Source: Hydrolagus colliei (taxonomy: Eukaryota). From it: 64,000 bases of DNA. Positions 10,740 through 58,779 of the stretch are shown one piece after another. The stretch covers positions 14,818,001-14,882,000 of the forward strand of contig CM068756.1 in NCBI GenBank assembly GCA_035084275.1, read 5' to 3'. The translations under genes and the position numbers were made by a program. Numbering within the stretch: the first letter of the stretch is position 1; each line of letters opens with the position of its first letter. A model generated the notes under the pieces. It ran no database searches, was not told where the DNA came from, and saw only the letters and a list, made by a program, of their open reading frames with translations.

Positions 10740-13700
10740 TTACACATCAACAGCAACTGTGGGCTGGGAAAGTAAAGCGAAAATCAACCAGGGTAGCAGG
10801 AGTTCAAATGGTTTGGCATTGAAGTGCTTGTGTTTTGCTTGGATTTGCCACAAATCCAATTGTGTTTGGATTGCCACAGTCATTTGGTCACCCAGGTCAG
10901 AGACAGAGAGGGGAAAGATAGAGAAGAAAGAAAGATTAACAACAGAAATATACAAACTAGTTGACAATAAACAGTGAAGTGAGATCCATTATATATAATA
11001 CAGCAAGTAATATACTGAGGTATACCTGGTCATACACAATGTTCTCGTCTTGTTTTTTCGGTCTTGTTTTTTTTTTTGCAACGATTCAAATCCATTTCGG
11101 AGTAAGTCACCATCTCATTCCCTGTTCCCTGCAGCTTCTGTAAAACAGAATATGATTCAGTGTTGCCATCACTGGTCTGGAGATTCCTGGGTAAGTATTG
11201 ATAAAAATGCCTCCACAAATAAATATTTTCACCTAAGTTTAAAATATTCAACACATAGCTTCTTATGACCGTGAGAATCCACCCAGTTTAGCAACTGTTC
11301 TAACTGTTCGGTAATCTACAGAATATGGGGTGTACATTTCCATATATGAGTGATGTCCCAGTGCCTCATATATTGACACACACAATAACAAATTTTACAC
11401 AACAAAAAATTCATGTGACTGTGCAGTGGCAGATTGCCAGCATCATATAACAGCCCAGGACACGGCCAGAGAATGAAGATTAGATGGCAAAGAAAGATTA
11501 ACCACAAAAATGTACAAACTAGTTTATTGTAAACATTGAAGTGAGGTCCACTATATATAAGGTAGCAGTTACTAATCTGAGATATACCTTTAGGTACACA
11601 ACATTCTCATCTTGTTTTTTAGGTCTTGGAGATTTTTTGCAACGATTCAAATCCATTTTGGCGTAAGTCACAGACTCAGTGCCTGCTCCCTGCAACGCCT
11701 GTAAAACAGAATGTGATTCAGTGTTGCCATCACTGGTCTGGACATTGCTTGATAAGTATTGATCAAAATGACCCCACAAATAAATAGTTTGACCTATGTT
11801 TCAAATATTTAGCATATAGACTCCAAATACTTTAGCAGTGACAGTCAATCAGTGTGGCAATTATTCATTGATGTACAGAAATATGAGGTGTACATTTCCA
11901 GATATGGTTGATATTACAGTGCCCCATTGATTGACGCAAACAATAACTAGTCTTACACAAAAATATCACATTGTCTTTCCAGTAGAACATCGTAACCAAC
12001 ATATCACAGCCCAGGATAGTGCCAGAGAGTGAAGATTAGAGGATATAGAAAGGTTCACCACACAAATATACAAATCCTCTTACAGTAAAAAATTTACTGA
12101 ATTTACATAATTCAATTGGACAGAAACGATTTCTGTTTTAAATATGCATTGCTCAAATATACCTGGGCATAAACAGTCCCCTCCTCTTGCCTTTTAGGCT
12201 TTAACTTTTTCTTGGAACTGGTTAAATTCAATGTGACACAAGACACCAGCTCATTCTTTGCTCCGTGGTTTGCCTATAAACAGAATGTGCTCACAAGAAA
12301 ACTATGTTGCATTCATAAATAATAAGTGAGATACATTATATAAAATATAGCAAGTAACATTCTGAGGTATACCTGGGCATACACAATGTTCTCGTCTTGT
12401 TTTTTCGGTCTTGGTTTTTTTTTGCAACGATTCAAATCCATTTCGGAGTAAGTCACCATCTCATTCCCTGTTCCCTGCAGCTTCTGTAAAACAGAATATG
12501 ATTCAGTGTTGCCATCACTGGTCTGGGGATTCCTGGGTAAGTATTGATCAAAATGCCCCCCACGAATAAATATTTTCACCTAAGTTTAAAATATTCAACA
12601 CATAGTTTCTTATGACCGTGAGAATCCACCCAGTTTAGCAACTGTTCTAACTGTTCGGTAATCTACAGAATATGGGGTGTACATTTCCATATATGAGTGA
12701 TGTCCCAGTGCCTCATATATTGACACACACAATAACTAATTTTACACAACAAACAATTCATGTGACTGTGCAGTGGCAGATTGCCAGCATCATATAACAG
12801 CCCAGGACACTGCCAGAGCATGAAGATTAGAGGGCAAAGAAAGATTAACCACAAAAATGTACAAACTAGTTTATTGTAAACATTGAAGTGAGGTCAGGTC
12901 CACTATATATAATGTAGCCGTACTATTCTGAGATATACCTTTATGTACACAACATTCTCATCTTGTTTTTTAGGTCTTGGAGATTTTTTGCAACGATTCA
13001 TATCCATTTTGGCATAAGTCACAGACTCAGTCCCTGCTCCCTGCAACGCCTGTAAAACAGAATGTGATTCAGTGTTGCCATCACTGGTTTGGACATTCCT
13101 GGATACGTATTGATCAAAATGCCCCACAAATAAATAGTTTGACCTATGTTTCAAATATTTAGCATATAGACTCCAAATACTTTAGCAGTGACAGTCAATC
13201 AGTGTGGCAATTATTCATTGATGTACAGAAATATGAGGTGTACATTTCCAGATATGGTTGATATTACAGTGCCCCATTGATTGACGCAAACAATAACTAG
13301 TCTTACACAAAAATACCATATTGTCTTTCCAGTAGAACATCGTAACCAACATATCACAGCCCAGGATAGTGCCAGAGAGTGAAGATTACAGGATATAGAA
13401 AGGTTCACCACAAAAATATACAAATCCTCTTACTGTAAAAAATTTACTGAATTTACATAATTCAATTGGACAGAAACGATTTCTGCTTTAAATATGCATT
13501 GCTCAAATATACCTGGGCATAAACAGTCCCCTCCGCTTGCCTTTTAGGCTTTAACGTTTTCTTGGAACTGGTTAAATTCAATGTGACACAAGACACCAGC
13601 TCATTCTTTGCTCCGTGGTTTGCCTATAAACAGAATGTGCTCACAAGAAAACTATGTTGCATTCATAAATAATAAGTGAGATACATTATATAAAATATAG

Positions 13701-16700
13701 CAAGTAACATTCTGAGTATACCTGGGCATACACAATGTTCTCGTCTTGTTTTTTTGGTCTTGGTTTTTTTTTGCAACGATTCAAATCCATTTCGGAGTAA
13801 GTCACCATCTCATTCCCTGTTCCCTGCAGCTTCTGTAAAACAGAATATGATTCAGTGTTGCCATCACTGGTCTGGAGATTCCTGGGTAAGTATTGATCAA
13901 AATGCCCCCACGAATAAATATTTTCACCGAAGTTTAAAATATTCCACATATAGCTTCTTATGACCGTGAGAATCCACCCAGTCTAGCAACTGTTCGGTAA
14001 TCTACAGAATATGAGGTGTACATTTCCATATATGGGTGATGTGGACTTTGGCATAGAGAGCACTATTTCCAAGTTTGCAGATGATACAAAGTTAGGTAGG
14101 GTAGTAAATGGTGAGGAGGACTGTAACCAACTGCAAGCAGACATACACAGATTGGTGGAATGGGCTGACATGTGGCAGACGGATTTTAATGTGGATAAGT
14201 ATGAGGTGATACACTTAGGTAGGAAAATTTATAGGAGGCAATATAGACTTGGTAGCTCAATTTTAAGTGGGGTGAACGTACAGAGAGATTTGGGTGTTCA
14301 AGTAAGCAAATCATTAAAGGTATCAGGGCAAATAGATAAGGCAGTATGACAGGCATTTGGTGCACTGAGCTTTATCAGTAGGGGCATAGAGTATAAGAGT
14401 AGGGAGGTTATGGTTAGTTAATCTATACAAAACACTGGTTAGGCCTCAGCTGGAGTACTGCGTTCAGTTCTGGGCCCCTTATTTCAGGAAGGACATTAAG
14501 GCACTGGAAAGGGTGCAGAGGAGATTCACGAGAATGATACCAGGAATGGGTTACCTTAGCTATGAGGACAGGCTGGAGAAGTTAGGACTTTTCCCATTAG
14601 GGCAGAGAAGGTAACGCGGAGACCTGATCGAGGTCTTCAAGATCATGAAAGGTTTTGACAGCTAGATAGGGAAAAGCTGTTTCTACTGGTAGGTGTGTGT
14701 GTGACCCGTGGTCACATTCTTAAGATATCTACCAAAAGAAGCAGAGGGGAGGTTAGAAGAATTTTTTTTACTCAGCGAGTTGTTCGAATTTGGAATGATC
14801 TGCCTGAAAGGGTAGTGAGGTCCGATTCGATAGCAGCTTTTAAGAGAGAACTAGATAGGTATCTGGGGAAGATGGGTTTGCAGGGTTATGGGGAGAAAGC
14901 TGGTGATTGGGGTTAATGAAAATGACTTGCACGGTCAAAGAGCCGGCACAGACTCGATGGGCCGAATGGCCTCCTTCTGTGCCGTAATATTCTATGATTC
15001 TATGTCCCAGTGCCTAATATATTGACACACACAATAACTAATTTCATACAACAAAAAAATCATGTGACTGTGCAGTGACGGTTGCCAACATCATATAACA
15101 GCCCAGGACACTGCCAGAGAGTGAAGATTAGAGGACAAAGAAAGATTAACCACAAAAATGTACAAACTAGTTTATTGTAAACATTGAAGTGAGCTCCACT
15201 ATATATAATGTAGCAGTTAATATTCTGTGATATACCATTGCGTACACAACGTTCTCATCTTGTTTTTTAAGTTTGGGAGATTTTTTGCAACGATTCAAAT
15301 CCATTTTGGCGTAAGTCACGGACTCAGTCCCTGCTCCCTGCAGCGTCTGTAAAACAAAATGTGATTCAGTGTTGCCATCACTGGTCTGGACATTCCTGGA
15401 TAAGTGTTGATCAAAATGCCCCCACAAATAAATAGTTCGACCTATGTTTCTAATATTTAGCATATAGACTCCAAATACTTTAGCAGTGACAGTCAATCAG
15501 TGTGGCAATTATTCATTGATGTACAGAAATATGAGGTGTACATTTCCAGATATGGTTGATATTACAGTGCCCCATTGATTGACGCAAACAATAACTAGTC
15601 TTACACAAAAATACAATTTTGGCTTTCCAGTAGAACATCCTATCCAACATATCACAGCTCAGGACAGTGCCAGAGAGTGAAGATTACAGGATAAAGAAAG
15701 GTTAACCACAAAAATGTACAAACTTTCTGATAGTAAAAATTTAATTCAGTCCCATTGGTTACTGAAGTGATATAATTCAATTGGATAGAAAATATTTCTC
15801 TTTTGAATTTGCATTGCTCAAATATACCTGGGCATAATCAGTCCCCTCCTCTTGCCTTTTAGGTTTTAAAGTTTTCTTGGAACTGGTTAAATTCAACGTG
15901 ACACAAGACACCGGCTCATTCATTGCTCCGTGGATTGCCTATAAAACAGAATGTGATCACAAGAAAACTATGTTGCATTCATATATAATAATAATCCTTG
16001 CATTTGATATTGCGGTTTTCACATCTTCTAGACGTCTGAAAGCGCTTCACAGAATATAATGTAAAGTGAATTGACTGTATCTTTGTGGTTGAGATGGGCA
16101 GCCAAATGTGCACAGCAGCGTCCCACAGTGTCCCACAGTTGTGGATTGAAATGAGCAACTACAAAAAATTTGGACGGATTATTATTAGGCATGTGGAGTA
16201 AGGAAACTTGCATATGGTTTCACCCTAATCTGCCTGGATTTGGACACGGTCTCACACTTGTAAGGCGAGTGCTCTAATCACTGAGCCACAGGAGCTCCAC
16301 ATAAAGTATCTTTCATGCCTGAATGTTATTCTGAGTCATTTAGAGATTGTTGTTTCTATTGCTTTGTAAATTGTTGAGTACGTATCCATCGGAAAGCCCT
16401 CGATAATAAATACTTTTACTAAAGCTGATCATTTTTAATGTATAGCTTTTACACACAGTATTACATTTCTATTGAATATTGTGTCACGAATTGCACCAAA
16501 CTGTGTGGTTCATTATTCAATATTAATTCGAGGCCACACAGATAGACAGAGGGAAGATATTCAACGCGTTGTTGTTTCTTAATCATGAACCATATCTGTC
16601 CAATACTATAATTCTGTTTCCAGCTGAAATATCCACTGAAATCAATATAAGAAATGTACCTGTTCTTCGCATTGGCCCGATAAGGTCTGGTTTCCTCGTG

Positions 16701-19700
16701 AGCCTTGGAAAGAAATTCAAAAAATATTCATCTAAATTCTACGTAAATAATAACAAATATATTTTGGTTACACCAATATTATGTCGAGCATTGGTTAACC
16801 CACTTGGAAAAGATGCCAAGGAATGAATGTGGTGCAGAATAGGTTTACCAGGATGATAGCAGTGGATGATGATATGCCCTATGAGCAGAAACTTTCGCCT
16901 TGTAAGATACCTACAAAATGGGAAATGTGGAGGTTTATTTTTCTCTTTTCCTCAACTATCACACTCAACCAGGTATTTCATATCCTAACTAGAAGGGTAC
17001 TGTAGTTATGGTGTGGAATACCACGTTTCATGTGATGGTTTGGGCAAATTACACATTCAGTTTCAAGAGAACACGAGAGGAAATAACCTAAATCAATTCA
17101 ACTGCAAGGATATTTTCCATGATTATTTTGAAATTGTCACGCAGTTTACTGTTAAGAAATCCTGTTTATCTATATTGCAAACAGAATCCTAAATCTGAGT
17201 TCTACAATCGAATTTCTGCCGATTGATCCTTGATACTTTTCTCAAATTATATACTGTACACACTCTGGATTTTGATTTATCGGGCTCAATTTCTGAATTT
17301 GCTCATGAGACAAATGTGCAACAGTGAAGAGGATTGCAATTTCATTGAAGTGATATGAAAACCAGCACATTGTACAGAGACATAGAGATGGCAGGTGAAA
17401 CTGGGCATTTGTGGATGTGTGACCGGTTGGGTGGTTTCACAGAGTGCTGAGGGGAATGTGGCCCAGGCGGATTAGAAAATAATACATTTTGTAAAATAAT
17501 ACATTGTCTAAAACTGTTTAATTCTAGCCGTAAGTGGAAACAAATAGGTGAATGGGATGTGAATTATTTAAGGAGAGAACAGAGACATGGTTGCTGAAGC
17601 TCAATCACAGCACATTTGAGATGTTCGTTGCATGGCAATTTCTAGTTGAACGTGCAGCCAAATCAATACAGGGTGAGTTTCTGTGAGGACATTTCTATAT
17701 GACAATTAATCGCTTCACGTAAATCATTTGGGTAGCTTTACAGGTGACTGCTCTCTCATTGTCACGTCTCGTCTATGAAATGAATTATTCTATCAAATTA
17801 ACGTAAATCTAATAGCAATTTGTCTTACCTTTCATTATGTGTAATTGGCATTCATTCCCCAATATGATCAAAAGTAGCAGAAATATCAGCCCTCCAACTA
17901 CACATCCAGCGATCAGTCTATATTTCTCTGCAAAAACAGCACGAACTGAATATGTCAGTGTCTCCAGCAATGAGTTATACATTCATTACCTGCATCATAT
18001 CAGAAATGTTTAAGCAGAAACAGTTTTTTTTTAAATGAACATTTGTTAAAGAAAATTTAACAGTGTGAGAGACGAAAGAGTAAATTCAAAGCGTGTCAAG
18101 CGAAGTTGAATATTATTGTACACAAATATTTCAATCCAGTATTCGGCTAGAAATGTATTTGATTATAGAATTATATATTGCAATTTTCTGTGCAAATAAG
18201 TGTAAATATATTTTGAAAAGTAATTTAGTAATCAACAATTGTATTTAGGAAATTACATTCGTTGGAACTGGAAACTGTAATACGATAAGTTTACCTACAA
18301 TTTGAAATAAAAAGGTGTTTAAGTAAAAAAGAAAGTCAGTAAGACAGGTAGGCATCCTACCATGCAATCCTTCCTTGTGTTTAGGAACGGCGTAATGGGC
18401 AACCACTGGATTCGGGTGGCAGACATGAGATGCCAGACAGGTATAAACAACCCCGCTCTCTAAAGGCTGGGTCTCTTCCATAGAGCTGGAGACTTCGTAA
18501 AGTCCATTCGAATTTATTTCTTTAGTGAGATTGATCCCAGTTCTAACTTCATTCCCATCTTTAAACCACACGAGCGTTATATTCCCCGGGGAAAACGCAG
18601 CCGTTTTACACACAAGAGACTGAGGCTTTGATGAATCACTTTCAGAATCTCTGGGGATTATCTTCAGCGGGGTCGGGGACACTGTAGGGCAGAGAATGGA
18701 GCAGAATCGTGTCACTTGTGATCAATTGGAATATAAACATTATTCTAATTTGAATTGTATAATAACTATTTCCTTGGAGGGTTTAGAAAGTTAAGGTACA
18801 TAATTTTAACATTGCGATTTTCAGAAATGGCGCGGAAATCTTCCCATCACATGGAATAATTTTGTTGTGAAATCCAGTCCACAGCGGCTTCAGATGCAGA
18901 ATTAAGTGGAATATTTAACAGCGAGGCAGACCATAGCTGTAAAGAGTTTGGGGAGAGGTGAAGACATTGGAGTAAAAGCTCTGCCACCTTTCTGCAGCAG
19001 AAAAACCTGTAGTTTAGGAGCATAAAGTTCCCGAATTCATTCCCGAAATCCATCTTCCTCCCCCTTCCGTCTCTACAGTTAATCCCATCTGAATACACAC
19101 CTCTCTCAGTGTCTTTTCGGCCACTCTCCCATCCCAGGTGGATTATAGCTCCGGCTGCCATGAATTCTTTGCCAAGCGCTTTAAGATGCTCTCCCAACAG
19201 TGAGCTATATTAACGTAAATTCAAGTAAATCTACAGTGAAGATCTCAGGCAAATCATGTCACTTACCACAAACAGTTAATTTCGAACCAGTTCCATTAAC
19301 CGCTCTATTACCCGGAATGACCAGGCTACAGTAATACATCCCAGAGACCTGGATGTCTGCAGCCAGGAGATTGAAGAAGGCGCTTCTTGAACCATTGAAA
19401 CCAAATTCTTTCGTTTGATCCTCTCTGAGGAATCCATTCTCTCCCATCTTCCACCAGTGAACTCTCACACTCTTGGTGCTATGGAAGGCACAGGAGAACG
19501 TCGCCTTCTCACCTCTGTTGACAATGATATGATCCGGTTGTTGTGTCACTGTGAACACTGTACAGTCAGCAGCTGTCAGAAATAAATTCAAACATTGTTT
19601 TAAAACAAAATACAACGAAATACACACAGAGCAAGTTAGAGATGCTCTTCGCTTATTCATGGATGTAAATAAAATGGGAACTTGATCTTTATTCTGTTTC

Positions 19701-19788
19701 TGAAAACTGATATATTGAATAATCACAAACCTTTAGAAATGATCCACACTGTGAGAGACAGACACTGAAACACAACACTCGCCAACAT
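10740..19788 (-). CDS. Receptor gene A: non-rearranging VJ-C1-TM IgSF receptor with expanded tyrosine-motif tail (SIRP/NKp30-like architecture)
   Basis: Exons, all GT-AG and phase-compatible: L 19788-19731, V 19572-19267, C1 18681-18361, TM 17927-17829, linker 16703-16660, nine tail exons (see repeat feature), candidate last exon 10763-10740 (PTVAVDV*). The last tail exon is 112 nt (+1). Confidence 0.8.
11026..15938 (-). repeat. Triplicated ~1.35-kb unit containing three paralogous 111-nt phase-0 cytoplasmic exons (X,Y,Z)x3
   Basis: X 15938-15828, Y 15346-15236, Z 13832-13722, X 13623-13513, Y 13049-12939, Z 12483-12373, X 12273-12163, Y 11698-11588, Z 11137-11026. Each has a pyrimidine-rich ..(t/c)ag acceptor and a gtata donor; introns are duplicated too. 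Confidence 0.9.
14043..15004 (+). mobile_element. 5'-truncated CR1 LINE
   Basis: ISKFADDTKLG RT motif, CR1 3' end GAATGGCCTCCTTCTGTG..ATTCTATGATTCTATG; it interrupts GTGATGT|CCCAGTGCC, which is intact in the sister repeats. Confidence 0.92.
15985..16300 (-). mobile_element. tRNA-derived SINE with L2 tail
   Basis: Full head-to-tail match to 22808-23110 in reverse orientation. Confidence 0.85.
16660..16703 (-). CDS. Gene A 44-nt phase 1-0 juxtamembrane exon (GSRGNQTLSGQCEEQ)
   Basis: ctttccaag| ... CAG|gtacat; same length and phase in B (31221-31178) and C (50890-50847). Confidence 0.8.
17829..17927 (-). CDS. Gene A transmembrane exon (EKYRLIAGCVVGGLIFLLLLIILGNECQLHIMK)
   Basis: tttttgcag| acceptor, G|gtaag donor, ~20-aa hydrophobic stretch, paralogous to B and C. 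Confidence 0.85.
18361..18681 (-). CDS. Gene A Ig C1-set exon
   Basis: LVCKTAAFSPGNITLVWFKDG...GLYEVSSS...YTCLASH: C1-set CxxxxFxPxxIxxxW and YxCxxxH; 321 nt, phase 1-1. Confidence 0.92.
19267..19572 (-). CDS. Gene A Ig V-set exon with germline-joined J-like G strand
   Basis: VTQQP..FSC..HWW..DIQVSGMYYC..NGTGSKLTV; 306 nt, phase 1-1; no RSS seen. Confidence 0.92.
19731..19788 (-). CDS. Gene A leader exon (MLASVVFQCLSLTVWIISK)
   Basis: ATG at 19788, G|gtttgt donor, hydrophobic; ETS site ACTTCCTG at 19881-19888 upstream. Confidence 0.8.
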
Positions 19789-20009
19789 CCTGATCTGTGA
19801 CTGAGACTAAGCCTAAAGCTGTGGCTGGACTGTGACCAGGGGTTGGAGTTGATCGAGATGAGATGTGAGAGTCATGTTTGACTTCCTGTCCCTGTGGGCG
19901 CAGCTTGCGCTCTGTTTTAAGAAAAATGTTTCCAGACTTTCACCTTATGTGAGATACATATGAGAAGACAATTCGCCATTTGCTCACATGGCTGGAGAGC
20001 CAACCTTGC

Positions 20010-20330
20010 CTATTAGTTGTTGAGAGCTCGTTTCTCTAACACTTGGGATCATTATCGTTGCTTTTCTCTCCTTCCTCCTGAACTGGCTTCAGGGAATCTC
20101 CTAAATTACTGTGACCAAAACTCTCGCTATCCCACTAGTCCTTGTCAGACTCCACTGGCTCCCTGTCACAAAACGGATCGACTTCAAGATTCTTACACTC
20201 GTCTGCAAAATACTGCCTGCCCTCCTCCTTCCTGATGTAGTCAACCGATCTTTCATCCACTCCTCCCTGAAACTATGGGACTCTCTCATTCATCCCCCCA
20301 TCTTGTCCCTCCTTCCCTTATTCATATGAT
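20010..20330 (+). mobile_element. L2 3' fragment upstream of gene A (paralog at 35345-35660 upstream of gene B)
   Basis: LHWLPVTKRIDFKILTLV L2 motif; duplicated together with the gene. Confidence 0.7.
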
Positions 20331-21124
20331 GATGGAAATTTTGATTTTTAAGCGTGCTTAACCCTCACCTCTTCCCCACCCAGTCACAGTGCGACAAGCA
20401 CCGCGTTAAGCTATCGGAGACTTCAAACCGTGTGAAGGATGCTGTATACATGTTGTTGTTTCATTCCATAACGGTATGAGCGAATGCTTATTTTAGTCTT
20501 CAACTTATTTGTTAAACAAATCTTTCGTTTATACAAATGTCAATGAACCCAACCATTCGTTACTAGAAGAGAAGCCATTAAATAGTTCTCAAGAGAATGA
20601 AGCTGACATTGACATAGATCAACTTGATGGTGAAGCTCCCAGCTCAAGGCGTTTAATGCAACATGTGCCCGAGTCCATTACATTTGACTGATTCCAGAAC
20701 AGAAGGTTCTGTTGATTCCATGGGTTTAATTTCCCAATTAATGTAAAAATCTATGCACGAAACATTGTTATGAATATTACTGTTGAATCAACCTGTATTT
20801 TGTTTGATTTTCTCCCGGTTTCCTGGCCAACGACCCCGGGTAAAAGTTTTTTTTTTATTCATAAAAAACGTAAAATGCCGCGAATAATGGAAATCTGAAA
20901 TCGCTGGCAACACTAGGCGGCATCTATAGAGAAAGGAAAAGTGGATAAACCTTTAGGGTCCATCACCCTTCACCAGAGCTCCCAGCGATTTCTGTTTTTG
21001 GTTTCTTTCTAATTTATTTCATGACTGTCTGTAAGACATTGCTGTGCAAAATTGGCTACCTTGTTCCCCTACTGGAGCCTATCAAAAAGTACACTAAATC
21101 CTGAGAAATGCCATCGCCATGCTT

Positions 21125-22170
21125 CAAACCAACTCCGTGCCCACCTCTCCTCCCACTCCCTCTTCCAACCGCTCCAGTCCAGTTTCCACCCTGCCCACAA
21201 TACGGAGACTGCTCCTCTCGATCTGCAACCAGGGCTCCCTCTGCCTCCTTATTCTCCTGGATCTGTCCACTGCGTTTGACAGAGTCAACCACACCATCCT
21301 CCTCCACCACCTGTCCTCCGTCATCCACCTCAGTGGGACCGCACTCGCCTGGTTCGAGTCCTACCTCACAAACCGCCAGCAGTACATCTCCACAAACGTC
21401 TTTTCCTCGCGTTGTTACACAGTTACCTGCGGGGTACCCCAGGGATCCATCCTTGCCCCCCTCCCCTTCCTCATCTATATGCTCCCTCTTGGGAATGTCA
21501 TCTACAGACATGGGACACACTTCCACATGTACGGGGATGACACCCAACTCTATTTCTCTACTTCACTATGCGACCCCCCAGACCCCTGATGTACTGTCCG
21601 CCTGCCTGTCAGACATCAGGAGCTGGATGAGCGCAAATTTCTTGCAGCTAAATGTTGACGAGACGGAGGACATACTCTTTGGCTCTCGTCCATGTCTCGT
21701 TCGCATGACTCTCACCTGCTCCAGCTTCCCGGTCTGTCCCTAAAACTCTCCGAGCCTGTGTACAACATTGGCATCAGGTTCGATCCCCAACTGTCCTTCC
21801 TGATATGGGGGACCATATCACGTCCCTTACCAGCACCGCCTTCTTCCACCTCTGACAGATCGCCCATCTCCGGCAATACCTCACCCCAAAAGCCGCTGAA
21901 ACCCTGGTCCATGCCTTCGTCACCTCTCGGCTGGACTATTCCAATGCCATCCTCGCCGGTCTCCCCTCCACCACAATCCATAAAATCCAACTCATTCAAA
22001 ACTCTACGCCCGTATACTCACCTGCACCAAACTTCACTCCACCATTACCCCAGTCCTTGCCAGACTTCACTTGCTCCCTATCCCAGAGAGGATCAACTTC
22101 AAGATCCTCACCCTTGTCTTCAAATCCCTCCACTCCTCTCCAATCTCCTACCTCTCTGACCTTCTCTCTC
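21125..22170 (+). mobile_element. L2 LINE RT region, frameshifted
   Basis: LLDLSTAFDRVNHTILL, GVPQGSIL, YGDDTQLY, WMSANFLQLN motifs spread over shifted frames. Confidence 0.9.
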
Positions 22171-22807: not shown

Positions 22808-23110
22808 GAGCTCCAGTAGCACAGTGGTTAGAGCACGCGTCTTACAAGCATGAGACCTATGTTCGAATCCAGGTAGACCAGGGCAAAACTTTAGCCAAGT
22901 TTCCTTACTCCACACGCCTAATAATAATACCTCAAAAAACACATAAACAAAATTGGTCGTTTCAATCCACGACTGCTGGCTGCCGCGTTTTGCCCACAAA
23001 TATACAGTCAATTCAATTTACAGTATATTCTGTGAAGCGCTTTGAGACGTTGATAAGATGTGAAAAGCGCTACATCATATGCAAGGATTATTATTATTAA
23101 GAATAATAAT
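22808..23110 (+). mobile_element. tRNA-derived SINE (Val-like head) with L2-type tail
   Basis: A-box AGCACAGTGGTTAGAGC, loop CTTACAA, B-box GTTCGAATCC, ~230-nt non-tRNA body, GAAGCGCTTTGAGACG tail and (ATT)n. Confidence 0.88.
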
Positions 23111-23470: not shown

Positions 23471-24052
23471 TTTCCAAGAGTTTGAAATAATATGATTGTG
23501 ATCATTTTTACAGTATTATAACGAGTATTATATATAATATGGAGTATTTGGCAAGAAAACTACATGAATATAACTCTTATTGTAGATCAAATTAAAATAT
23601 ATTCCAATAACAATCAGCTAGCAGCAATTAATTGCAGGATATTTGCAAATTTGCGGACTCCTGTAGATTGGTGGATAGAACAAACGCCTCACAAGCGAGA
23701 CAACCTCAGGTATCCCCAGGTAGAGGAAAACGTTCAGCAAGTTTCCTGAATCCACACGCCGCGGTTTACCCAGCAGTAATTGGGAACCCAGGGGCTAGTG
23801 CATTCGCGGACTGCTTTTACTGTAGTAATGATATCCTAAAAAGAATAATTATTTTTTTGAAAAACTATTAATTTGGTCGTGGAATCCACGGCTGTTGATA
23901 ACACTCTGCTGGGCGAAATTTGCTCCCACGATTTGAATACAACATGTACAGTCAAATCACTTCACACTATATTCTGTGAAGCATCTACAGACGACTCAGA
24001 GACAGACTCAGCGCTATTTCAAATCCAAGGCTTATTATTCTTATTAAATTAC

Positions 24053-24373
24053 CTGAGTTAGATTTGAAAACTGTGAATCTGGAGAACCTTGGAATGCAGA
24101 GGCTGTTGAGAGACACAGAACAGGAAAGAAAAAAAAAACCCGCGTTACACAGGCAGCTTCTCTTCCAAATACCGCAGCTCAAAACTCTGTAAAGACCTTT
24201 TGAATTCCTTTCTTCACTGGAATTAATCTAAGTTTTAACTTCATTGCCATCTTTACTCCAGGTGAGCGTTATATCTTCAGGGTAAAACGCAGCCGTTTCA
24301 CACACAAGAGTCAGAGAATTTGAAGAATTTCTTTCAGAATCTCTGCGGAATATTTTCAGCGGGGTCGGGGGGA
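24053..24373 (-). pseudogene. Relic E: C1-set pseudo-exon
   Basis: VPPTPLKIFRR..LVCETAAFYPEDITLTWSKDGNEVKT* (TAG at 24230-24228), plus a frameshift shared with relic F; splice sites intact; no V or TM. Confidence 0.88.
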
Positions 24374-25639
24374 CTGGAGGACAGAGAATGGACCAGAATC
24401 ACGTAAATTGTTATCAACCACAACAACAAACTTACATCTACAGAGCATCTCTCACGTCGGGAGGACGTCGATCAGTTGGAATCTAAAACTTTATTCTAAT
24501 TTGAATTCTACATTAACTGTTTCTTTGGAACATTATAGCAAGGAATCTACATTGTAAAGGCAGGAACGTGATTTTGTAGTTTTAAAAGTGTTGGTGTCCT
24601 TTGATCGGAACGATGTGTTTAGTTTAGGAGATATAGTCGCCTTGGACTAAAGAAGGTAGGAGTACATAATAAGATATTATATTAAGATATCTCAAGTTGC
24701 TGCACATAATGTACACGTAAAATCAGAACAAAATATCTCTATCAATAAATTGTCGTTGCCTGGACCACAGGTGGAAGATATTCTGATGAATAATAATGAT
24801 AATAATAATTATTTTCTTTGAATTTTTCACTGTGAAAAACTGCCTGAAAGAATTTCACGGGAATCAATGTAACTTGTGGCGATTTCGCATTTCTGTATAT
24901 GAGCTCGGCAGCCAGTTTCCCACACAGCAATATACCACAAATAGCCATGAAGTCTGCAATTAAATTGGACAAGGCTATTCATTAGCCGTGGAGGGCGCTA
25001 TATCAATGACACTTGTTATAACATTATCAATAAGTGTGGTGGTGAGTTGTAATGGAAACTTGCCAAGGTTTTGAGCTGTCTTGAATTGAACTCAGGTCTC
25101 TGGCTTGCAATTACAAGGATTTGTACAGTAAAATAACAGCCCCGTACCCCCTAAACCCCATGATTCTGATTATCTTTAATGTGATGGTCTGTAACAAGCT
25201 GACTTGGAGCACAGCTGTATGAATGATTTATCGATCATTTTTATTTCCTCATTTGACTTCCAGAATTGTCAGTTCAGGAAATTGAGTTTGTGTTGAAAGT
25301 GCAATTTGTGAGGACATGTGATCACTATGAGGAGCTAAACCCAATCCATCGTTAGCACATCAATGATTTAATTGTGTCTAGTAGCCTATGGCAGAATTCA
25401 AACTCACGTTGTATATGTAGGGATGCGAGGCTTGACTGATACCAATGTAGTGGATTTTTAGATAGTTCCAAGCAGCTATTGATACAAACCAATAGGCAAC
25501 CAAGTAATTAGATCCAATCAACTTGCCTGACATCTTCACGGATATCTGTGTAATTTTGTTACTCAGCTGTTGTGTATCGAGTGCATGCAGCAGCGCTCAG
25601 TGAAATGTTTTATATCATTGCCTTAATTACTGGGCTGGC

Positions 25640-46499: not shown

Positions 46500-47900
46500 C
46501 TCAAAACCCTTCTTCTCTATCGTCCCCCCAAGCCTCTACCACCTTCCTCTCAGATCTCTCCACCCTCTTGTCTTCCCTCTCCCTTTGCTTTGAATGCCTC
46601 CTCATTTTAGGTGATTTCAACCTCCACTTCACCCAATCCTGTTCCACCACTGGAAACGTTTCCTCATTCCTTGACTCGCTTAATCTATCCCTCCAACAAC
46701 AACAAGAACAACAAAATTACATATGTATAGTGCCTCTCACGTCAGGAGAACATCCAAAGATGCTGTACAGTTACTCCTTCAGACTCAAGCTGAGGGCAGG
46801 GATGTGGGAGGGGAATAGGGAGTATAAGGAGTTGCCGATGGGTCGATCAAGGGGAGAGTCTGGAGGCTAGACTTCAAGGAGGCCTAGAAGTACGCAAGGA
46901 GGAGGGATTTCGGGATGGCATTACCCAGGGGTCTATCCTTCACCCCCTATGTTTTGATATCTAATGCTTCACCTTGGTGACATCATCCACCAACATGGGG
47001 TCAACTTTCAAATGTATGCAGATGACACCCAACTACAGCTTTCTACCTCTACCCTCAACTCCATAACTATAGCTGTCCTGACAGACTTCCTGTCAGACAT
47101 CAAGTCGTGCATGAGAGCTAACTTTCTAAAGTTGATCGTCAACAAAACTGTAGCCTTCCTGATTGGCGTGCATCAGCATCTTCCCTCACCAAGCACCGGC
47201 AGCTTCAACCTCCATGGTTGCACACTCAACCTCACTAAGCCAGTCAGAAACCGAGGTATCTTGCTCGATCCTCAACTATCTTTTCTCCCCTACATCCAAG
47301 CCTTGACCTGCTCTACCTTCTCACACCTCTGCAATATTGCCCAACTCTGCCAATACCTCACCCCCAAGGCCGCTGAAATCCTCATTCATGCCTTCATCAC
47401 ATCCCAGCTTCACTTAGCCAATGCCTTTCTTGTCAGCATTCGCAATTCCACGCTCCATAGGCTGCGAATAATCCAGAACTCTACAGTTTGTGTCCTTAAC
47501 CACCTCAAGCTTTGCAACCCCATCTCACCCATCCACCACATAGAGGATTCAATTCACGATCCTCAAATTCAAAGCTCGTCATGGACTCGCCCTACTCTAC
47601 CTCTGCAACCGCCTCATCTCTGACCAACCACTCCGCAAAGCAAGCTTTGACCTGATTCATATCCACCAACCAACCCACCCACCATTGGCGGGTGAACCTT
47701 TAAACCCTCTGCCACCAAACTCTGGAATTCCATCACTTTGTCCTTCCCCTCCCCCTCAAATCCCACCTCAAGACCCTCCCCTTTGACCATGCCATCGGTC
47801 ATCCCCACTTTCCCTCCATCCTCAGCTTAGTTCTGAAACAATATGACTTCCAACACCTTGGAATGTCATCCTAACGTGAAAGGCACGATTCAAATATAAT
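46500..47900 (+). mobile_element. L2 LINE fragments (endonuclease remnant plus RT)
   Basis: LLILGDFNLH (APE-like), then MYADDTQL, MRANFLKL, HAFITSQL, IIQNS, and tail. Confidence 0.88.
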
Positions 47901-48910: not shown

Positions 48911-49493
48911 GCAATGTAATTACAATAGTTATATTTAAGAAAGTTAGCAGATGCGTACAAACATTTTTTCACAATTAAGTATGGTTATATAGGTATGGTG
49001 AGCAATAATTTCCAATAATTTTCCTGAACACATATTATTTAAAAATCTAATAAATGCAGTTATGTTTGAAATGGGTGGAAAGAGCAATGCAGCACGAGAC
49101 TAACATGGCACATCATTTGGTAAATTTAAAAACTACATCTAATATACACCACTATCAGTTTCTGTGCCTGTTACATTACTTGGATCTTGGTTCCCTAGAG
49201 ATAGCAGCTGCTCCTTCTCTATAATTTCACACATGGATTTTTGCATACTCTGTATTCTTAACAGTACTTTTAGGTTTTCCTGGTTTTTTTGGAGGGATGT
49301 AAATCCAGAACAGTGTACATCACATTGTTCCCAGCTGTTCTTTGATTGGTCTGAAAAGGCAAAGTTTGACAATTTCATCAATTTATTTTACTTCAGTTTT
49401 CAAAAATCTACTTTGACATTTGTCAATTATTATCTGCAGCATGGCATGCCCCATACTTCCTTTGATAAAGACACTGCTCCTCACAGAACTGAG

Positions 49494-52400
49494 CTAAACA
49501 GAATCTACTAGCCACAATTCCATTCCATATTGGATCAGTTGCGCATCAACAGCAAACTTGTGCTGGGAGAGAAAAGTGAAAATCCACCAGGTAAGCAATT
49601 GTTCAAATAATCTGGACTAGAAGTGTTTTTGTTTTGCTAAAGAATGGTGGATTGCCACAGTCATTTCATAGCCCAGGTCAGAGTCAGATAGAGAAAGGAT
49701 CAGGGGAGAAAGGAATATTAACCACATAAATATACAAACTAGATTATGATAAACATTGAAGTGAGATCCACTATATAAAATGTAGCAGGTACTAGTCCGA
49801 GACATACCTGGGCATATATAACCGTCTCATCTTGTTTTTTAGGTGTTGGAGTTTTATTGCGATTCAAATCCATTTTGGCGTAAGTCACCAACTCATTCCC
49901 TGCTCCCTGCAGTGTCTATAAAACAGAATGTGGTACAGTGTTGCCATCACTGGTCTGGAGATTCCTTGATAAGCATTGATCAAAATGCTATCAAGAATCA
50001 GTTTAAAATATTCAACATATAGCTTCCAGATATTGTATCAGTGAGAATCATCCAGTGTAGCAGTTGTTCGATGATCTACAGAAATATGTGATGTGCGTTT
50101 CTATATATGGGTGATGTCCCAGTGCCTCATAGATTAACAGACACAATAACTAGTCATACAAAAAAACTATGTAACTTTTCAGTGGCAGATTGTCAGCAGC
50201 ATATAACAGTACAAGATTAACCACAAAAATGTACAAACCATCTTACAGAGAATACTGAATTGAGTTCCATGCTTTACTGAAACAAAATAAATAATTTGAT
50301 AGAAAAGTTTTCTGTTTTCATTTTGTGTTTCTCAGATATACCTGGACATACACAGTCCTTTCTTCTTGCCTTTTAGATTTTGAACTTTTCTTGCAACTAG
50401 TCAAATTCAATGTGACATAAGCCACTGGTTCATTCTCTGCTCCGTGCTTTGCCTATCAAACAGAATGTAATCACAACAATAAAAATACATTACATTTCGG
50501 TAGCAACTTTGAGGTCTCAATGAAGTCCTAAAGTGCTGATAGATTATTGTCTCTACCATTCTGTAAATTGTTCTGTAAGGGCTAATCAGAAAGCCTATGA
50601 GAATAAATATTTTCACCAAAGTTCATAATTTTACCAAATATTTTATAAGCAGAGTATTATTGGGTAATCAGTTATCAATTCCATGAAACTGGGTACCTCA
50701 TTTTAAATAATACACTGAGTCCACACGGATGTACATAATGAATATAGTTAAAGTGGTCTCATTTCTTAATGATGAACAATATCTTTCCAGTACAAGAATT
50801 CTGTTTTCAGGAGAAATATCTGCTGAAATGAATTTTAACAATGTACCTGTTCTTCATCATGACCCAACATGTTCTGGTTTCTGCGGGAACCTTAGAAGGA
50901 AATTCAAAAAATTAAATATTCACTTAAGTTTATGTAAATATTTTTAAATATATTTTGGTTAGGCCAAATAAAAAGTGATTCTCAGGCCACAAACTGCCAG
51001 AGCCTGGGTCTAAAAACTTAATTGTCATCCAGCACAAAATTGTCTTTCTAATGTGCATGAATAATTTTAACTTCTTTACACAACGCCCGCTTCCTACCTA
51101 ACTTCTCTTATTCCTTCTTGCACTGCTGCCCAGTGCTCTCTGGAACACCATTCCCAAGTGCTTCAGATTAACTCTTTCACACGCATGCTTCAAATTGTTG
51201 ATGGAATAACTGAGAGAATAGGTAATTTGTAGTATTTAAAATAAAACAATAGCGGTAATGCTAAGATGCAAAATCGTTAATTAGACCACAATTAGAATAA
51301 TGTGTCCAGGATTCTTAACCTTGGTGTGCCCTATGAGCAGATACTTTCACCTTGGAATATAGAAGATGGTGTGGTGACTCACTAGAGGACTAAAATTATG
51401 AGGGTTTTGATAGCACCAATGGAGACTTTATTTCCAATAGTAGGATTCAGTAACAAGAAGATAGCAGTAGAATGGGAAATTTGGAGATAAGGATTTTTTT
51501 TCTTTACATCAAGAGTAGACAGAGTATTTAGGATATCCAACACCCTGTTGGTGTGATCGTTGTGGTATAATGCACATTCACTTTCATAAGAGTACAGTAC
51601 TCAAAGAAGTAAGCTATAACTTTTCAAATGCAAAGGTAATGGTGCAAAGCAGGTAAATTGGGATTGAAAGCATTGCTGAAATAAAGCAGCCCAAACACAA
51701 TGAATTTCTTGTATGCTGTAAATTTTTATGGTTCTAACCAGCTCCATGTACCTATTTGTCTTTCGTTTCAGGGATCTTTCCTGTCCCCACATCCATTTTA
51801 TACCACAAGATTCATTGCCATTCCATTTATGAAGTGCCATTAATTTGGAGTTTTCCACAAGGCATGAATAACACTATACATGCTTCTCTATTCCCTATGT
51901 TGAATATTCCCCTATTCCTTGTTTCCCAATAAAAATAATAACAATACTCATGGTTATAGCATTTTTTGCGTCTTCTAGACAACTCAAATTGCTTCACAGA
52001 ATATACTGTGAAGTACCAGTATATTTGTGGGCGAAAAGCAGCAGCCAACTGTGCACAGCGATGTCCCACAAACGGTCGAGGTTTGAGTGACCAACTTATA
52101 ATTTGTTTTTATTTCAAGGAAAATTATCCCAGAAACGTAATCCGTCATTCAACTGACAACCAGGTTTCTATTTAGGTTTCTATTTCCCACTCTCTCCTGC
52201 TCCATGCCTGGCTATTGACAATAGAATGTAAACGTCTTTGTCACGGGTGAATGGGACGTCAATTATTTCAAGAACGAACACTAGGGGCTGAAGGACATTC
52301 TCTGCAGTTCAATCTCAACAGATTTTCGACACGGGTTGTATGGAAATATCTGATTACATGTTCGACTAAATGATTACAGGGTGAGTTTTTATGAGGACAT

Positions 52401-55400
52401 TTGCATTTTGCAATCAATCGCAACGCACAAATCATTTGTGTAACTTGAAAGGATAATAATAATTCTTGCATTTGATACCGGTCAGTTTCTTTTTGACTGT
52501 CACCTGTAGTCCATGAAACAAATTATTCTATTCAACTAAACATTGACAAATAACTTACATTAAAGAGCAATACATCTTACCTTTCCGTTGGTATAATTGC
52601 CATTGTTTCCCAATAATGATCAAAAGCAACAGTAATATCAGCCCTTCAACTACACATCCAGCGATCAGTTGACGGCCAATCACTACAAGAATAGCATAAA
52701 CTGAACGTGTTACTGACTCCAGCAATGAGGTACACTTTCATTTTGGAGGTTACCAAACAATGAAAATGTAACACCCAATTTGAAGGAAGTATTTATAATA
52801 TAATAACAACAAAACAGGACATACCACGTTAAAATGTGTACATTTGATGCCTTCAGTTCTGATTGAGCAGAGTCTCAGTATTGGAATATTGTTAAAGACA
52901 ATTTAAGAGACGAAGGAGTAAATTCAAAGAGGGACATGTAAAGTTGAATGTTATTGCACAAATATTTCAATGCAGTATTTTGCTAGAAAATGATATGATT
53001 ATAATTGTCTGTGTAAGTACATGTAACTAAACTTTGGGTAGCAATTTAGTTTTCAACAATTGTGTTTGGGAACATAACAGCATATAAATAAATTTAAATA
53101 CAATTTCCAGCAATGAGGTGTTTAACAAACACTGAAAGGCAGCAAGAGAAGTAGGCATCCTACCATCCAACCCTGTGTTGGATTCAGAAACGGTGTAACT
53201 GGCAACCTCTGGATTCCGAAGGCTGACATGAGATGCCAGACAGGTATAAACAACCCCGCTCTCCAAAGGCTGTATCACTTCCATAGAGCTGGAAACTTCA
53301 TGAAGCCCATTGGAATTCTTGTCGTTCTTGAAATGAATCCCAGTTTTAACTTCATTGGCATCTTCAAACCACGTGAGCATTAAATCCCCTGGGAAAATTG
53401 CAGCTGGTTTACACACAAGAGTCTGAGAATTCGATGAATCTCTTTCAGAGTCTCTGCGGACTATCTTCAGCGACCTCGGGGGGACTGTCGGACAGAGAGC
53501 AGAGCAGAATCTTATACTTGTCATCAGTTGGAATATAAAACTTTATTCTAATTTGAATTGCATATTAACTATTTCCTTGGCACATTATAAAATGGAATCT
53601 GGATTCTAAAGGCACGAATGTGATTTTGCCGCTTTGAAAGTGTTGTTGCATTTGTTGGGAAAAATGTGTTCAGTTTAGGAGATACATGTAGAGTCACCTT
53701 CGAGGGGCTAAAGAAGATAGGGGTACATCATCTTAACATTGTGTCTCACATGATGTTAAACCGTTCTTATTACATTGAATATTGTGAAGTTGTGAAATCC
53801 AATCCCACGACTGGCTTTAGATGCAGAATTAAGTGGAATATACTAAAGGGAGACAGAATATATTTGTAAACAGTTTGGAGAGAGGTGAAGAAACTGGAAA
53901 AAGCTCTGCCACCATTCCAGGGCGACTACAACCCGCATTTATATAGTGCCCTTCACGTGAGATGGTAACGTTAGATCCAGATTTAAATAGAGATTTCACC
54001 ATCAATAGAGAAATAAGCAAAATGTCCCCATTCACACCAACATTAATTTTCTTCCATTGTATTTCTCTACATTTGAAAAGATTTCAATTGATTTACAAAA
54101 GATAAAACAGATTTATTCGAAACCATTTTGTGGCTGTTTGTGGGACATTGTTGCGAGTGAAATGTTCAAGTTTTGTAAAGTGTTAATTTTTATCTTTCGT
54201 ATAACAATAATTATCCTTATTTTTGATATAGTATCTTAGACATTGTTAAGGTATCTCAACTCGTAGCACATAATATACTATGAACAGGGTTGATTGTGTA
54301 CATGTGGGCAAAATTCAGAGAAAATATGTAAATCAGTCGTTTATCATTGCCTGCACAATATGTGAAAGATGAGTATTCATCGCCACAATATTAATGCTTA
54401 TCTTCGAGGTATTCACGGTGAGAGAACCGCCTCAAAGCATTTAATTTGATTCACTGTAAAGTATGGTGAGTTTGCATTTCTGTATGAGATCAGAACTCGG
54501 TAGCCAGTTTTCCAAACAGCAATGTACCACCAAACAGTCATGAAGTGAATAAGCAAATTTAACTGGAGGACTCATTAGCCAGAACACACCGAGGAAGAAT
54601 TTCTCTTTTGCTTTTGATTAGTACCGCAGGATCTTTAATATTCACCTGAACAAGCAAAGGGGACCCGAGTTTAACGTCTCCCCCAGTGTGGAAGCCACGG
54701 AGCGCTCCCCAGCATCGCAGTGAATTGGGAGCAATCCGAGATAATCGGAATAAATGCCATCAAGATATAATAAAATATCAGATCGATTAATAATAAAAAG
54801 AGGAATCCTTGTTGATATAGCACTGATCACCTCTCTATAAATATAGATTTACTCTATATATGTGGGATAAATCCAGCAGCCAATTTCACGCATCAGTGTA
54901 AACAAACAGTCGTGGATTGAAATGACCGATTTAGTGTTGTTTTTATTTGCCGAATTATTAACTAGGCGTGTGGAGGAAGGAAACTTGTCCAAAGTTTTGC
55001 GCTGCCTGGAGCTGAACCCATGGCACTCGCTTCTAAGGCGAATACTCTAGCCACTGAGTTACAGGACTCCAGACTATAGTTCTAGTCACGGTGGTATGGA
55101 GGGACAGACATGTTTGAAAACTTGTATAACGCAATGATGGAGCAACTCATCTTCCCGCTGTGTTCCGTTAGATAAATTTTCCAGCTCAAATCAGTGCAAT
55201 AACAGAGGGCAAAACTTAATAATTTACTCATATTGATTCCAAAATGCAACCCTGCATCACATTTGAACATTCTATGGTTCTAATATATTAACACTTACCT
55301 TGTACAATTAACTCTGATCCAGCTCCATTTCCTGCTACTTTCCCCTTACGGAACACAGCACAGACATAGACTCCTGAGTCGTTCAAAGTCACATTTAGCA

Positions 55401-55722
55401 GCTGGAATGTATTGGAATCGAATACTTTCCTGTGAGCGGGTATTTTATGTAAGTATTCACCCTCATCTTGTTTCCACCATTGAAATGTCAAAGCTGAACT
55501 TTGTTGATCATTCCCAATCTCGCAGGTGAATTGAACCTTTTCACCTTGCAGGAGACAAAGGTGGGAGAAAGTTAGCAGGAAAGAAAGACGGAAGTATTCA
55601 CTGTACACATCTTGAAACTCCTTATCTATATTGTTTTGCATTGAAACTGTGCTGTAGTAAAATGACAGACCTGTGGCTACAATCCCCATTAGAGAAAGAT
55701 AGAGGATCACATCACTGGCCAT
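49494..55722 (-). CDS. Receptor gene C: divergent VJ-C1-TM receptor with ITIM-type tail; V-exon start uncertain
   Basis: L 55722-55671, V (55544 or further upstream)-55299, C1 53484-53164, TM 52682-52581, linker 50890-50847, X 50452-50342 (VAYVTL; TVYVQ), Y 49915-49808 (108 nt; VTYAKM; VIYAQ), candidate last exon 49562-49494. Confidence 0.7.
52581..52682 (-). CDS. Gene C transmembrane exon (VIGRQLIAGCVVEGLILLLLLIIIGKQWQLYQRK)
   Basis: ttcttgtag| acceptor, G|gtaag donor. Confidence 0.85.
53164..53484 (-). CDS. Gene C Ig C1-set exon
   Basis: LVCKPAAIFPGDLMLTWFED...YTCLASHVSL; 321 nt, open. Confidence 0.9.
54590..54730 (-). mobile_element. Deu-domain SINE fragment
   Basis: GGATCTTTAATATTCACCTG..GGGACCCGAGTTTAACGTC is the reverse complement of the Deu core. 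Confidence 0.6.
55299..55544 (-). CDS. Gene C Ig V-set exon core (strands B-G) with J-like end
   Basis: GEKVQFTC..FQWWK..FQLLNVTLNDSGVYVC..AGNGAGSELIVQ, G|gtaagt donor. Confidence 0.88.
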
Positions 55723-58775: not shown

Positions 58776-58779
58776 TTCA

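Follow-up and report, generated by a model that had tools for sequence, protein, structure and literature searches.

A predicted tandem cluster of non-rearranging VJ–C1 receptor genes with inhibitory-type tails in the cartilaginous fish Hydrolagus colliei

The stretch of Hydrolagus colliei DNA analysed here (the window; 64,000 nucleotides, contig CM068756.1 of assembly GCA_035084275.1, positions 14,818,001–14,882,000, forward strand) carries three tandem genes, A, B and C, for predicted membrane receptors built of immunoglobulin (Ig) domains. Self-comparison of the window, which contains no run of N, resolves three paralogous minus-strand units (A, ~10237–20360; B, ~28917–35696; C, ~49039–55800), within which the eight-exon genes extend over 10478–19788, 29155–35106 and 49270–55722, respectively. 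The exon order is the same in all three: a split leader, a single exon that encodes a variable domain with its joining strand (VJ), one C1-set exon, a transmembrane (TM) exon and tail exons with tyrosine motifs, among them inhibitory motifs of the immunoreceptor tyrosine-based type (ITIMs). All exon models have polypyrimidine-AG acceptors and GT donors with frames and phases kept. The leader exons finish in phase 1, and phase-1 introns separate the leader, V, C1 and TM exons. The spliced in-frame proteins are 373 (A, minimal form), 378 (B) and 354 (C) residues long. Together with decayed copies, the three genes are probably part of a chondrichthyan multigene array of non-rearranging type I membrane receptors, and in the same reading they would be SIRP-like inhibitory receptors that recruit SHP phosphatases. 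The exons of gene A are the following.

19731–19788 (−), exon 1, leader part 1 (MLASVVFQCLSLTVWIISK plus 1 nt, phase 1), an ATG-initiated hydrophobic open reading frame (ORF) with a GT donor; 89% identical to the leader of Callorhinchus P0007
19267–19572 (−), exon 2, VJ, 306 nt, ending in ...NGTGSKLTVC and then GTAAGT; placed by motif, Pfam and splice sites
18361–18681 (−), exon 3, C1-set, 321 nt; Pfam C1-set 46.8 bits, E 3.8e-12
17829–17927 (−), exon 4, stalk and uncharged TM segment (LIAGCVVGGLIFLLLLIILG)
16660–16703 (−), exon 5, 44-nt cytoplasmic exon (SRGNQTLSGQCEEQ), phase 1 to 0; matches Callorhinchus ...GPRRNQEGSSHYEEQ...
15828–15938 (−), first cassette exon, 111 nt, phase 0-0, NEPVSCVTLNL...TDYAQ, with the ITIM tyrosine changed to cysteine
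15236–15346 (−), second cassette exon, 111 nt, TLQGAGTESVTYAKMDL...VVYAM
13722–13832, 13513–13623, 12939–13049, 12373–12483, 12163–12273 and 11588–11698 (−), six further intact 111-nt cassettes
11030–11140 (−), ninth cassette copy, a pseudo-exon frameshifted by an expanded A-run
10478–10549 (−), last coding exon, TNQRTTGNKLTYTVLYLHPSDKT followed by the stop, with the canonical ITIM LTYTVL

Gene B comprises eight exons.

35049–35106 (−), exon 1, leader
34585–34890 (−), exon 2, VJ, ending in ...NGTGSQLTVC; predicted local distance difference test score (pLDDT) of the AlphaFold2 (AF2) model ~90 over the domain
33516–33836 (−), exon 3, C1-set; Pfam C1-set 54.7 bits, E 1.3e-14; AF2 pLDDT ~80–87
32834–32947 (−), exon 4, stalk and uncharged TM segment; AF2 helix at residues 242–264
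31178–31221 (−), exon 5, 44-nt cytoplasmic exon
30350–30460 (−), exon 6, cassette, canonical ITIM VTYVTL and TVYAQ
29687–29797 (−), exon 7, cassette, MTYAQM ... VIYSQ
29155–29226 (−), exon 8, last coding exon, ITIM LTYTVL and then the stop

Gene C is organised in the same way.

55671–55722 (−), exon 1, leader (MASDVILYLSLMGIVAT); aligns with the leader exons of Callorhinchus P0015/P0016
55299–55544 (−), exon 2, 5'-truncated VJ, 246 nt, A strand missing, new acceptor, frame kept
53164–53484 (−), exon 3, C1-set; Pfam C1-set 34.0 bits
52581–52682 (−), exon 4, TM segment with a glutamate (LIAGCVVEGL; LIAGCVVEGLILLLLLIIIG)
50847–50890 (−), exon 5, 44 nt
50342–50452 (−), cassette with ITIM VAYVTL
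49808–49915 (−), second cassette
49270–49350 (−), last exon, ITIM VMYTVL

The TM, 44-nt, 111-nt phase 0-0 cassette and last exons were placed by comparison with Callorhinchus proteins. Two of these, RefSeq proteins P0015 and P0016, have an identical order of tail modules, and their genes carry 111-nt AG...GT cassettes, which supports the splicing pattern of A, B and C indirectly. An earlier, sequence-only reading of this DNA had proposed non-rearranging VJ receptors with a single C1 domain, a membrane anchor and inhibitory-type tails in a cartilaginous fish, and the gene models agree with it, except that it placed the coding end of gene A at 10740 instead of 10478.

J-type strands of the form GxG[ST]xLx[VI] occur exactly three times in the six-frame translation of the window (GTGSKLTV, GTGSQLTV and GAGSELIV), all on the minus strand, in accord with the earlier claim of three VJ exons ending in GxGSxLxV. 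Each strand lies ~10 residues after Y-x-C, and the exon ends there, with a GTAAGT donor directly next to it. In all three genes a single uninterrupted exon encodes V and J, in contrast to the separate segments of a rearranging receptor. A search of both strands of the 64 kb for recombination signal sequences (RSSs; heptamer with at most one mismatch and CAC fixed, 12/23±1 spacer, nonamer with at most two mismatches) found no site, against 2.1 expected from Markov shuffles, and the heptamers that occur singly within the leader and V exons are not paired with a nonamer. The stated lack of RSSs beside the V exons is therefore upheld.

The V-type exons score about equally well as Ig_3, I-set and V-set domains (for A and B the V-set score does not exceed the Pfam cut-off), and 53 residues separate the two cysteines (Cys28 and Cys82 in the alignment). 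These mixed scores and the Cys–Cys spacing indicate a short V/I-type domain with a J-like G strand. In the AF2 model both domains are predicted with confidence (pLDDT ~90 and ~85), and the V domain appears to lack a C'' strand. The C1-set exon, one per gene as had been claimed, scores well above the Pfam cut-off of 21 bits in all three genes. Hallmarks of the C1-set are a 13-residue spacing between the B-strand cysteine and the C-strand tryptophan, (F/Y)(F/Y/H)P where the BC loop begins and xVxH after the F-strand cysteine (Hatherley et al., PMC2785349). In A, B and C the spacing is 13 residues, the BC loop has FSP, FFP or IFP, and the F strand reads C-L-A-S-H, with alanine replacing the hallmark valine.

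The ectodomain resembles antigen receptors, as the sequence-only reading had held. In a sequence search of the Protein Data Bank (PDB) with the whole ectodomain, Ig λ light chains are the best matches (E 1e-15 to 1e-21 over V-J-C), and SIRPα is found at E 1.3e-14. The top 50 Foldseek matches of the AF2 model are all Fab light chains, in a databank dominated by Fabs. The V profile, over its full length including J, scores ~41–47 bits with T-cell receptor (TCR) Vα/Vβ, V-NAR and Ig light-chain V domains and also matches I-set domains; frog NCR3-like scores 36, PD-1 23, human NKp30 21 and SIRPα d1 17 bits. The C1 profile gives 47–49 bits for Ig λ C, 40 for SIRPα d3, 39 for HLA-DRB β2, 33 for UrIg2 C3 and 27 for SIRPα d2. 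The reference sequences for part of this per-domain comparison were entered by hand, with the SIRPα ectodomain verified against PDB 2wng. In these sequence and model comparisons the nearest counterparts of the ectodomain are Ig λ light chains and the V domains of TCRs, with the C1 domains of SIRP and UrIg2 about equally near.

Like Ig λ and TCR chains, the genes have a VJ–C1 layout, a split leader and phase-1 introns. These shared features and the light-chain matches in sequence and fold raise the question of whether A, B and C are simply germline-joined Ig light-chain genes, or other antigen-receptor genes of that kind. Some homologues are auto-named 'immunoglobulin lambda-1 light chain-like', and germline-joined Ig genes do exist in chimaeras (PMC12227049). 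However, identity to light chains is ~20–25%, the short V domain scores with both I-set and V-set, there are no RSS relics and the family forms a clade separate from Ig C domains. Unlike Ig λ or TCR chains, the genes run on into a membrane anchor and an ITIM tail of their own, by which this explanation is effectively refuted.

The tail is assembled from a 44-nt exon, 111-nt phase-0 cassettes and a terminal ITIM exon. Each cassette encodes an ITIM-like tyrosine and a second tyrosine 23 residues later. ITIMs that conform to (S/I/V/L)xYxx(I/V/L) number two in B (VTYVTL and LTYTVL), two in C (VAYVTL and VMYTVL) and one in A (LTYTVL). The tyrosine motifs noticed earlier thus stand in part: the canonical ITIMs are present, but the apparent xVYAQV includes the donor GTA, and the spliced reading is VYAQ/T (the stroke marks the exon junction), as in shark and chimaera proteins (TVYAQTKQ). 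The uncharged TM segment that had been described for all three genes is found in A and B but not in C, which has a glutamate there.

These tails recall SIRPα. In BLASTP against human SIRPα the alignment is colinear, with V and C1 matching d1 and d2 (E 2e-10) and C1, TM and tail matching d3, TM and tail (E 6e-12); the human SIRPα tail was entered by hand. The ITIMs are superposed: GVTYVTLNLTSSKK aligns to DITYADLNLPKGKK, i.e. VTYVTLNL..KK to ITYADLNL..KK, and ESMTYAQMDL to DTLTYADLDM. The tyrosines are spaced by 23 residues in each cassette and by 24 and 26 in the SIRPα tail. Like SIRPα, the proteins combine a non-rearranging V domain with a J-like G strand, a C1-set domain, a single TM segment and paired ITIM-type tyrosines ~24 residues apart. 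Their J strand aligns with SIRPα GAGTELSV and conforms to the SIRP J-like pattern GxGTxLxV. Unlike SIRPα, they have one C1 domain and not two (d2, d3), with no further C1 exon between the C1 and TM exons, their second tyrosine motif is VYAQT and not xEYASI/V, and the tail is built from duplicable 111-nt cassette exons.

SIRPα ITIMs recruit SHP-1/2 (PMC12975943), and the SIRPα-like ITIMs found here make an inhibitory mechanism plausible. In such a mechanism, suggested by the motifs, the VJ domain would bind a ligand through loops like complementarity-determining regions (CDRs), Src-family kinases would phosphorylate the tail tyrosines, and the ITIM pairs would dock the tandem SH2 domains of SHP-1, SHP-2 or SHP-2L, damping activation as in SIRPα.

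The same evidence could mean that A, B and C are direct (co-)orthologues of the tetrapod SIRP family, i.e. members of the same lineage with one C1 domain instead of two. Besides the colinear match from V to tail and the similar tyrosine spacing, SIRPα and SIRPγ are among the top PDB matches, and many family members are named SHPS-1-like or SIRP beta-1-like by RefSeq. A V-C1-C1 model from Chiloscyllium (P0018) and short-tailed Scyliorhinus proteins with an arginine in the TM segment (P0013/P0014), reminiscent of SIRPβ-type partners, also speak for it. On the other hand, the C1 profile prefers Ig λ C (49 bits) to SIRPα d3 and d2, SIRPα d1 falls far below TCR and Ig V domains and the frog NCR3-like protein with the V profile, and ITIM-type tails are short motifs that could have arisen by convergence. 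In the C1 tree (small sampling), the family is one clade (support 98/99), but its link to SIRPα d2/d3 lacks support (47/78), and no position among SIRP, UrIg2, Ig, TCR and MHC domains is supported. With the same small sampling, neither V nor C1 is closer to SIRP than to Ig, TCR or UrIg2. Of the separate V and C1 phylogenies that had been proposed as a check, the C1 tree shows the family as monophyletic and leaves a relation to SIRP without support. "SIRP-like" holds for the tail and TM segment and not for the number of C1 domains or for any specific grouping with SIRP domains. We regard direct orthology to SIRP as unlikely, although it is the strongest of the four competing explanations.

The genomic neighbourhood does not speak in its favour. 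There is no marker of SIRP-region synteny in the window, where the sole trace of a neighbour is an ORF similar to UQCC2 exon 1 at 6587–6729 (+), within a GC-rich stretch (~6450–6900); human UQCC2 is at 6p21.3, not 20p13. This ORF matches zebra-shark UQCC2 (tblastn E 7e-17) and, weakly, Pfam UQCC2_CBP6. UQCC2 exons 2–4 were not found in the 64-kb window, nor any UQCC2 sequence in the four Callorhinchus loci fetched, whose neighbourhoods were covered to ±10 kb. Since a conserved tryptophan is changed, the position of the phase-0 donor is not conserved and exons 2–4 are missing, the UQCC2-like exon may be a relic. In zebra shark, UQCC2 adjoins ITPR3, which is its neighbour in the human extended major histocompatibility complex (MHC) class II region as well (6p21.31).

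This hint of an extended-MHC neighbourhood bears on another possibility, that the genes are MHC-linked VJ receptors of the NKp30 (NCR3) lineage to which a C1 domain and an inhibitory tail were added. Outside cartilaginous fishes, a search pre-filtered by shared 5-mers found a carp VJ-C protein (E 1e-8) and frog NCR3-like proteins (E ~1e-4), the latter making up two of the three non-chondrichthyan profile matches, with 36 bits over the whole V profile. A C1-skipping Callorhinchus isoform (P0029) is named NCR3-like. The family does share a non-rearranging VJ-type domain with NKp30. However, NKp30 has no C1 domain, a charged TM segment and a short tail without ITIM; unlike it, the family has a C1 exon, ITIMs and, in A and B, an uncharged TM segment. 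Human NKp30 reaches 21 bits and is not in the top 60 PDB matches of the V profile. NCR3-like genes in an elasmobranch MHC table adjoin ddah2, in class III, and in Hemiscyllium UQCC2 and a family member sit on different records (58.7 versus 85.0 Mb). An NKp30 origin is thus improbable.

Several other families of joined-VJ or C1-bearing proteins were considered. NITR, PRARP, SIRP, NKp30 and CD8 have been grouped as joined-VJ members of the Ig superfamily (PMC11599192). The present genes are like the NITRs of bony fish in being clustered, germline-joined VJ receptors, many with ITIM tails. NITRs consist of V (+I) domains and are not known to have a C1-set domain, and NITR identity was rejected for that reason. 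B7/NCR3LG1 identity was rejected for lack of a J-type G strand and absence from the top PDB matches, and tapasin/TAPBPL identity for a different N-terminal domain and no ITIM.

UrIg and UrIg2 come closer in several respects: they share with the family a single-exon VJ, a split leader, C1-type domains, restriction to cartilaginous fish, and module duplication with gene conversion. UrIg2 (PDB 9dmx) is the second-best match of the C1 profile. Yet UrIg is secreted and has three C domains, and UrIg2 has 9–11 (PMC12227049), unlike the present multigene cluster with its one C1 domain, TM segment and ITIM tail, so identity with either was rejected. The per-domain scores of UrIg2 C1–C3 are 20–33 bits, with no supported clustering with the family.

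Highly significant protein homologues are found in cartilaginous fishes only (chimaeras, sharks and rays), with members in Callorhinchus, Heterodontus, Scyliorhinus, Chiloscyllium, Hemiscyllium, Heptranchias, Cetorhinus, Mobula, Hypanus and Hemitrygon. An exhaustive HMMER search of representatives returned 188 proteins at E<=1e-30, and all 10 of the 10 sampled were chondrichthyan; the best 150 matches were filled by giant multi-Ig proteins and family members, which left little room for outgroups. Identity of the homologues to the proteins of the window is at most ~55%, and non-coding DNA is 65–80% identical to that of Callorhinchus. In Callorhinchus many genes lie in a single orientation on one 18-Mb record (C. 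milii MU249845.1), over at least 15.25–15.57 Mb (at least 325 kb). The family is monophyletic and, contrary to the sequence-only reading, not lineage-specific.

The possibility that it was undescribed fares better in part. RefSeq has already annotated members automatically, under inconsistent names: 'tyrosine-protein phosphatase non-receptor type substrate 1-like' (SHPS-1-like), SIRP beta-1-like, NCR3LG1-like, NCR3-like, tapasin-related-like, Ig lambda-1-like, TCR beta-like, PD-L1-like and MHC II-like. The searchable literature, which does not cover several key papers, yielded no description of the family, so that a prior description is possible.

Some members depart from the common architecture. 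Scyliorhinus canicula P0013 and P0014 have a short tail and an arginine in the TM segment, which suggests that they would be paired activating forms. In the Chiloscyllium plagiosum P0018 model the two C1 domains are near-identical. Callorhinchus P0029/P0019 is the C1-skipping isoform with the NCR3-like name.

The trees of the two domains disagree. In the V tree, A and B join Callorhinchus P0050/P0007 (95/92), and C joins P0002/3/15/16 (98/98); as far as this tree tells, the groups are two V lineages older than the species split. In the C1 tree, by contrast, A, B and C fall together (99/96) within the group of P0002/15/16 (97/96), and the C1 domain of P0050 lies outside that group. This conflict makes A and B mosaics, in which the V domain of one lineage is joined to the C1-to-tail part of another, and indicates exon shuffling, unequal crossing-over or gene conversion. 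The array would thus evolve through the birth and death of genes, its C1-to-tail part being homogenised by exon shuffling or gene conversion and its V lineages persisting across species.

Gene A arose from B by a recent duplication, with the loss of one ITIM tyrosine and an amplification of its cassettes. It has eight intact 111-nt copies and one frameshifted copy, as compared with two cassettes each in B, C and the Callorhinchus genes examined, and the array is broken by a fragment of a long interspersed nuclear element (LINE). All six additional intact copies have an open 111-nt frame, a polypyrimidine-AG acceptor and a GTATA donor. The tandem repeat unit is ~1.35 kb long (10967–12703 versus 12315–14042, 96.1% identity in self-BLAST); Tandem Repeats Finder, with a longest period of 500, found nothing in this array. 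The first ITIM tyrosine is a cysteine in all three copies of its cassette. If all cassettes were spliced in, the tail would have 15 tyrosines. Between A and B, four of the seven V-domain replacements fall in the BC (CDR1-like) loop.

Gene B shows no lesion in its sequence and appears wholly intact. Gene C may be defective: compared with two Callorhinchus orthologues, a ~120-bp deletion took the original acceptor and the A strand of its VJ exon. A new AG preserves the frame, so the V domain would begin at the B strand.

A number of observations count against the view of A, B and C as working SIRP-like inhibitory receptors. The second tyrosine of the cassette (VYAQ/T) has no hydrophobic residue at +3, which the SH2 domains of SHP phosphatases favour (PMC12151841), and the SIRPα tail used in the comparison was entered by hand. 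The terminal TQYAEL-type motif of Callorhinchus P0002 lies beyond the ends of A, B and C. The beta and gamma cassettes carry YxxM, a PI3K p85-type motif, so that the tail may signal in more than an inhibitory way. No transcript of A, B or C was found, and predicted protein B had no exact match in public assemblies. For A versus B, the ratio of nonsynonymous to synonymous differences (pN/pS) is 0.74 in VJ and 1.45 in C1 (small counts), and ~0.7–1.45 across exons, so that constraint may be relaxed in at least one copy.

The last of these leads to the explanation that A, B and C are decaying copies, pseudogenes or nearly so. It is favoured by the missing A strand in gene C, by the lost ITIM tyrosine, LINE fragment, frameshifted cassette and pN/pS near 1 (versus B) in gene A, by stops before the last Callorhinchus tyrosine motif in all three genes, and by at least four pseudogene relics among them. 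Against this stand the eight exons of each gene, in which frames stay open, phases are kept and splice sites are canonical, the lack of any lesion in B and the conservation of the family across cartilaginous fishes, which together make general decay rather unlikely. The reading of the genes as SIRP-like inhibitory receptors within a larger array remains the probable one.

The sequence after the stop at 10376–10477, 29056–29154 and 49179–49268 (−) still reads KPKSTVKNTE(C/Y)AEIHV..., homologous to the end of Callorhinchus P0002 (KPKSTVKNTQYAELHV). With a TGA shared by A and B and a 1-nt insertion (frameshift) in C, the last tyrosine motif appears to have been lost twice. Between the genes and next to them there are at least four decayed copies.

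24024–24392 (−), C1 pseudo-exon with an in-frame stop and a frameshift, found by tblastn
37826–38378 (−), C1 pseudo-exon (deletion and frameshift) and a V 5' fragment
39749–40970 (−), two leader/V 5' fragments, relics of a P0017-like subfamily
8157–8290 (−), C1 exon fragment, a relic

The rest of the window contains several repeats. A ~2.65-kb element forms an inverted pair near the window ends (1431–4073 (+) and 59186–61839 (−), 98.7% identical), with a third, partial copy at 56523–58792 (96–97% identity). Its longest ORF has no Pfam domain, and a transposon and a recent segmental duplication are both possible origins. Rfam tRNA matches barely over threshold occur at 5126–5197, 54997–55068 and 62752–62806 (−), and ARAGORN found no tRNA genes in the window. 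The matches lie in or near members of a ~300-bp dispersed repeat family (copies at ~4896–5195, 15985–16293, 22812–23103, 30514–30808 and 62510–62809) and are probably tRNA-derived short interspersed nuclear elements. Reverse-transcriptase fragments at 21119–21589 (+) and 46964–47623 (+) match Pfam RVT_1 (E 1e-14 and 6e-3), and related ORFs lie at 14011–14916 and 27432–28500; these are LINE insertions between the genes and inside the cassette array of gene A.

Until the family is defined, comparative studies will be led astray by its inconsistent names (SIRPα-, B7H6-, tapasin-, Igλ-, TCRβ-, PD-L1- and MHC II-like). As a model, the family would serve for the study of V diversification versus homogenisation of the constant and signalling parts, of ITIM dosage by cassette duplication and of C1 pairing. 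Single-exon VJ genes joined to C1 are being actively sought as vestiges of the receptor that came before Ig and TCR (PMC12227049). It is conceivable, though we hold it doubtful, that the family is a third, hitherto undescribed lineage of antigen-receptor-like genes that do not rearrange, alongside SIRP and UrIg/UrIg2, in which V lineages are trans-species and the C1-to-tail part is homogenised. If so, it would represent a light-chain-like VJ–C1 membrane chain near the design of the receptor that the RAG transposon is thought to have split, possibly close to the SIRP ancestor. A conserved, clustered VJ–C1–TM–ITIM family would put a SIRP-like, light-chain-like membrane receptor at the base of the jawed vertebrates.

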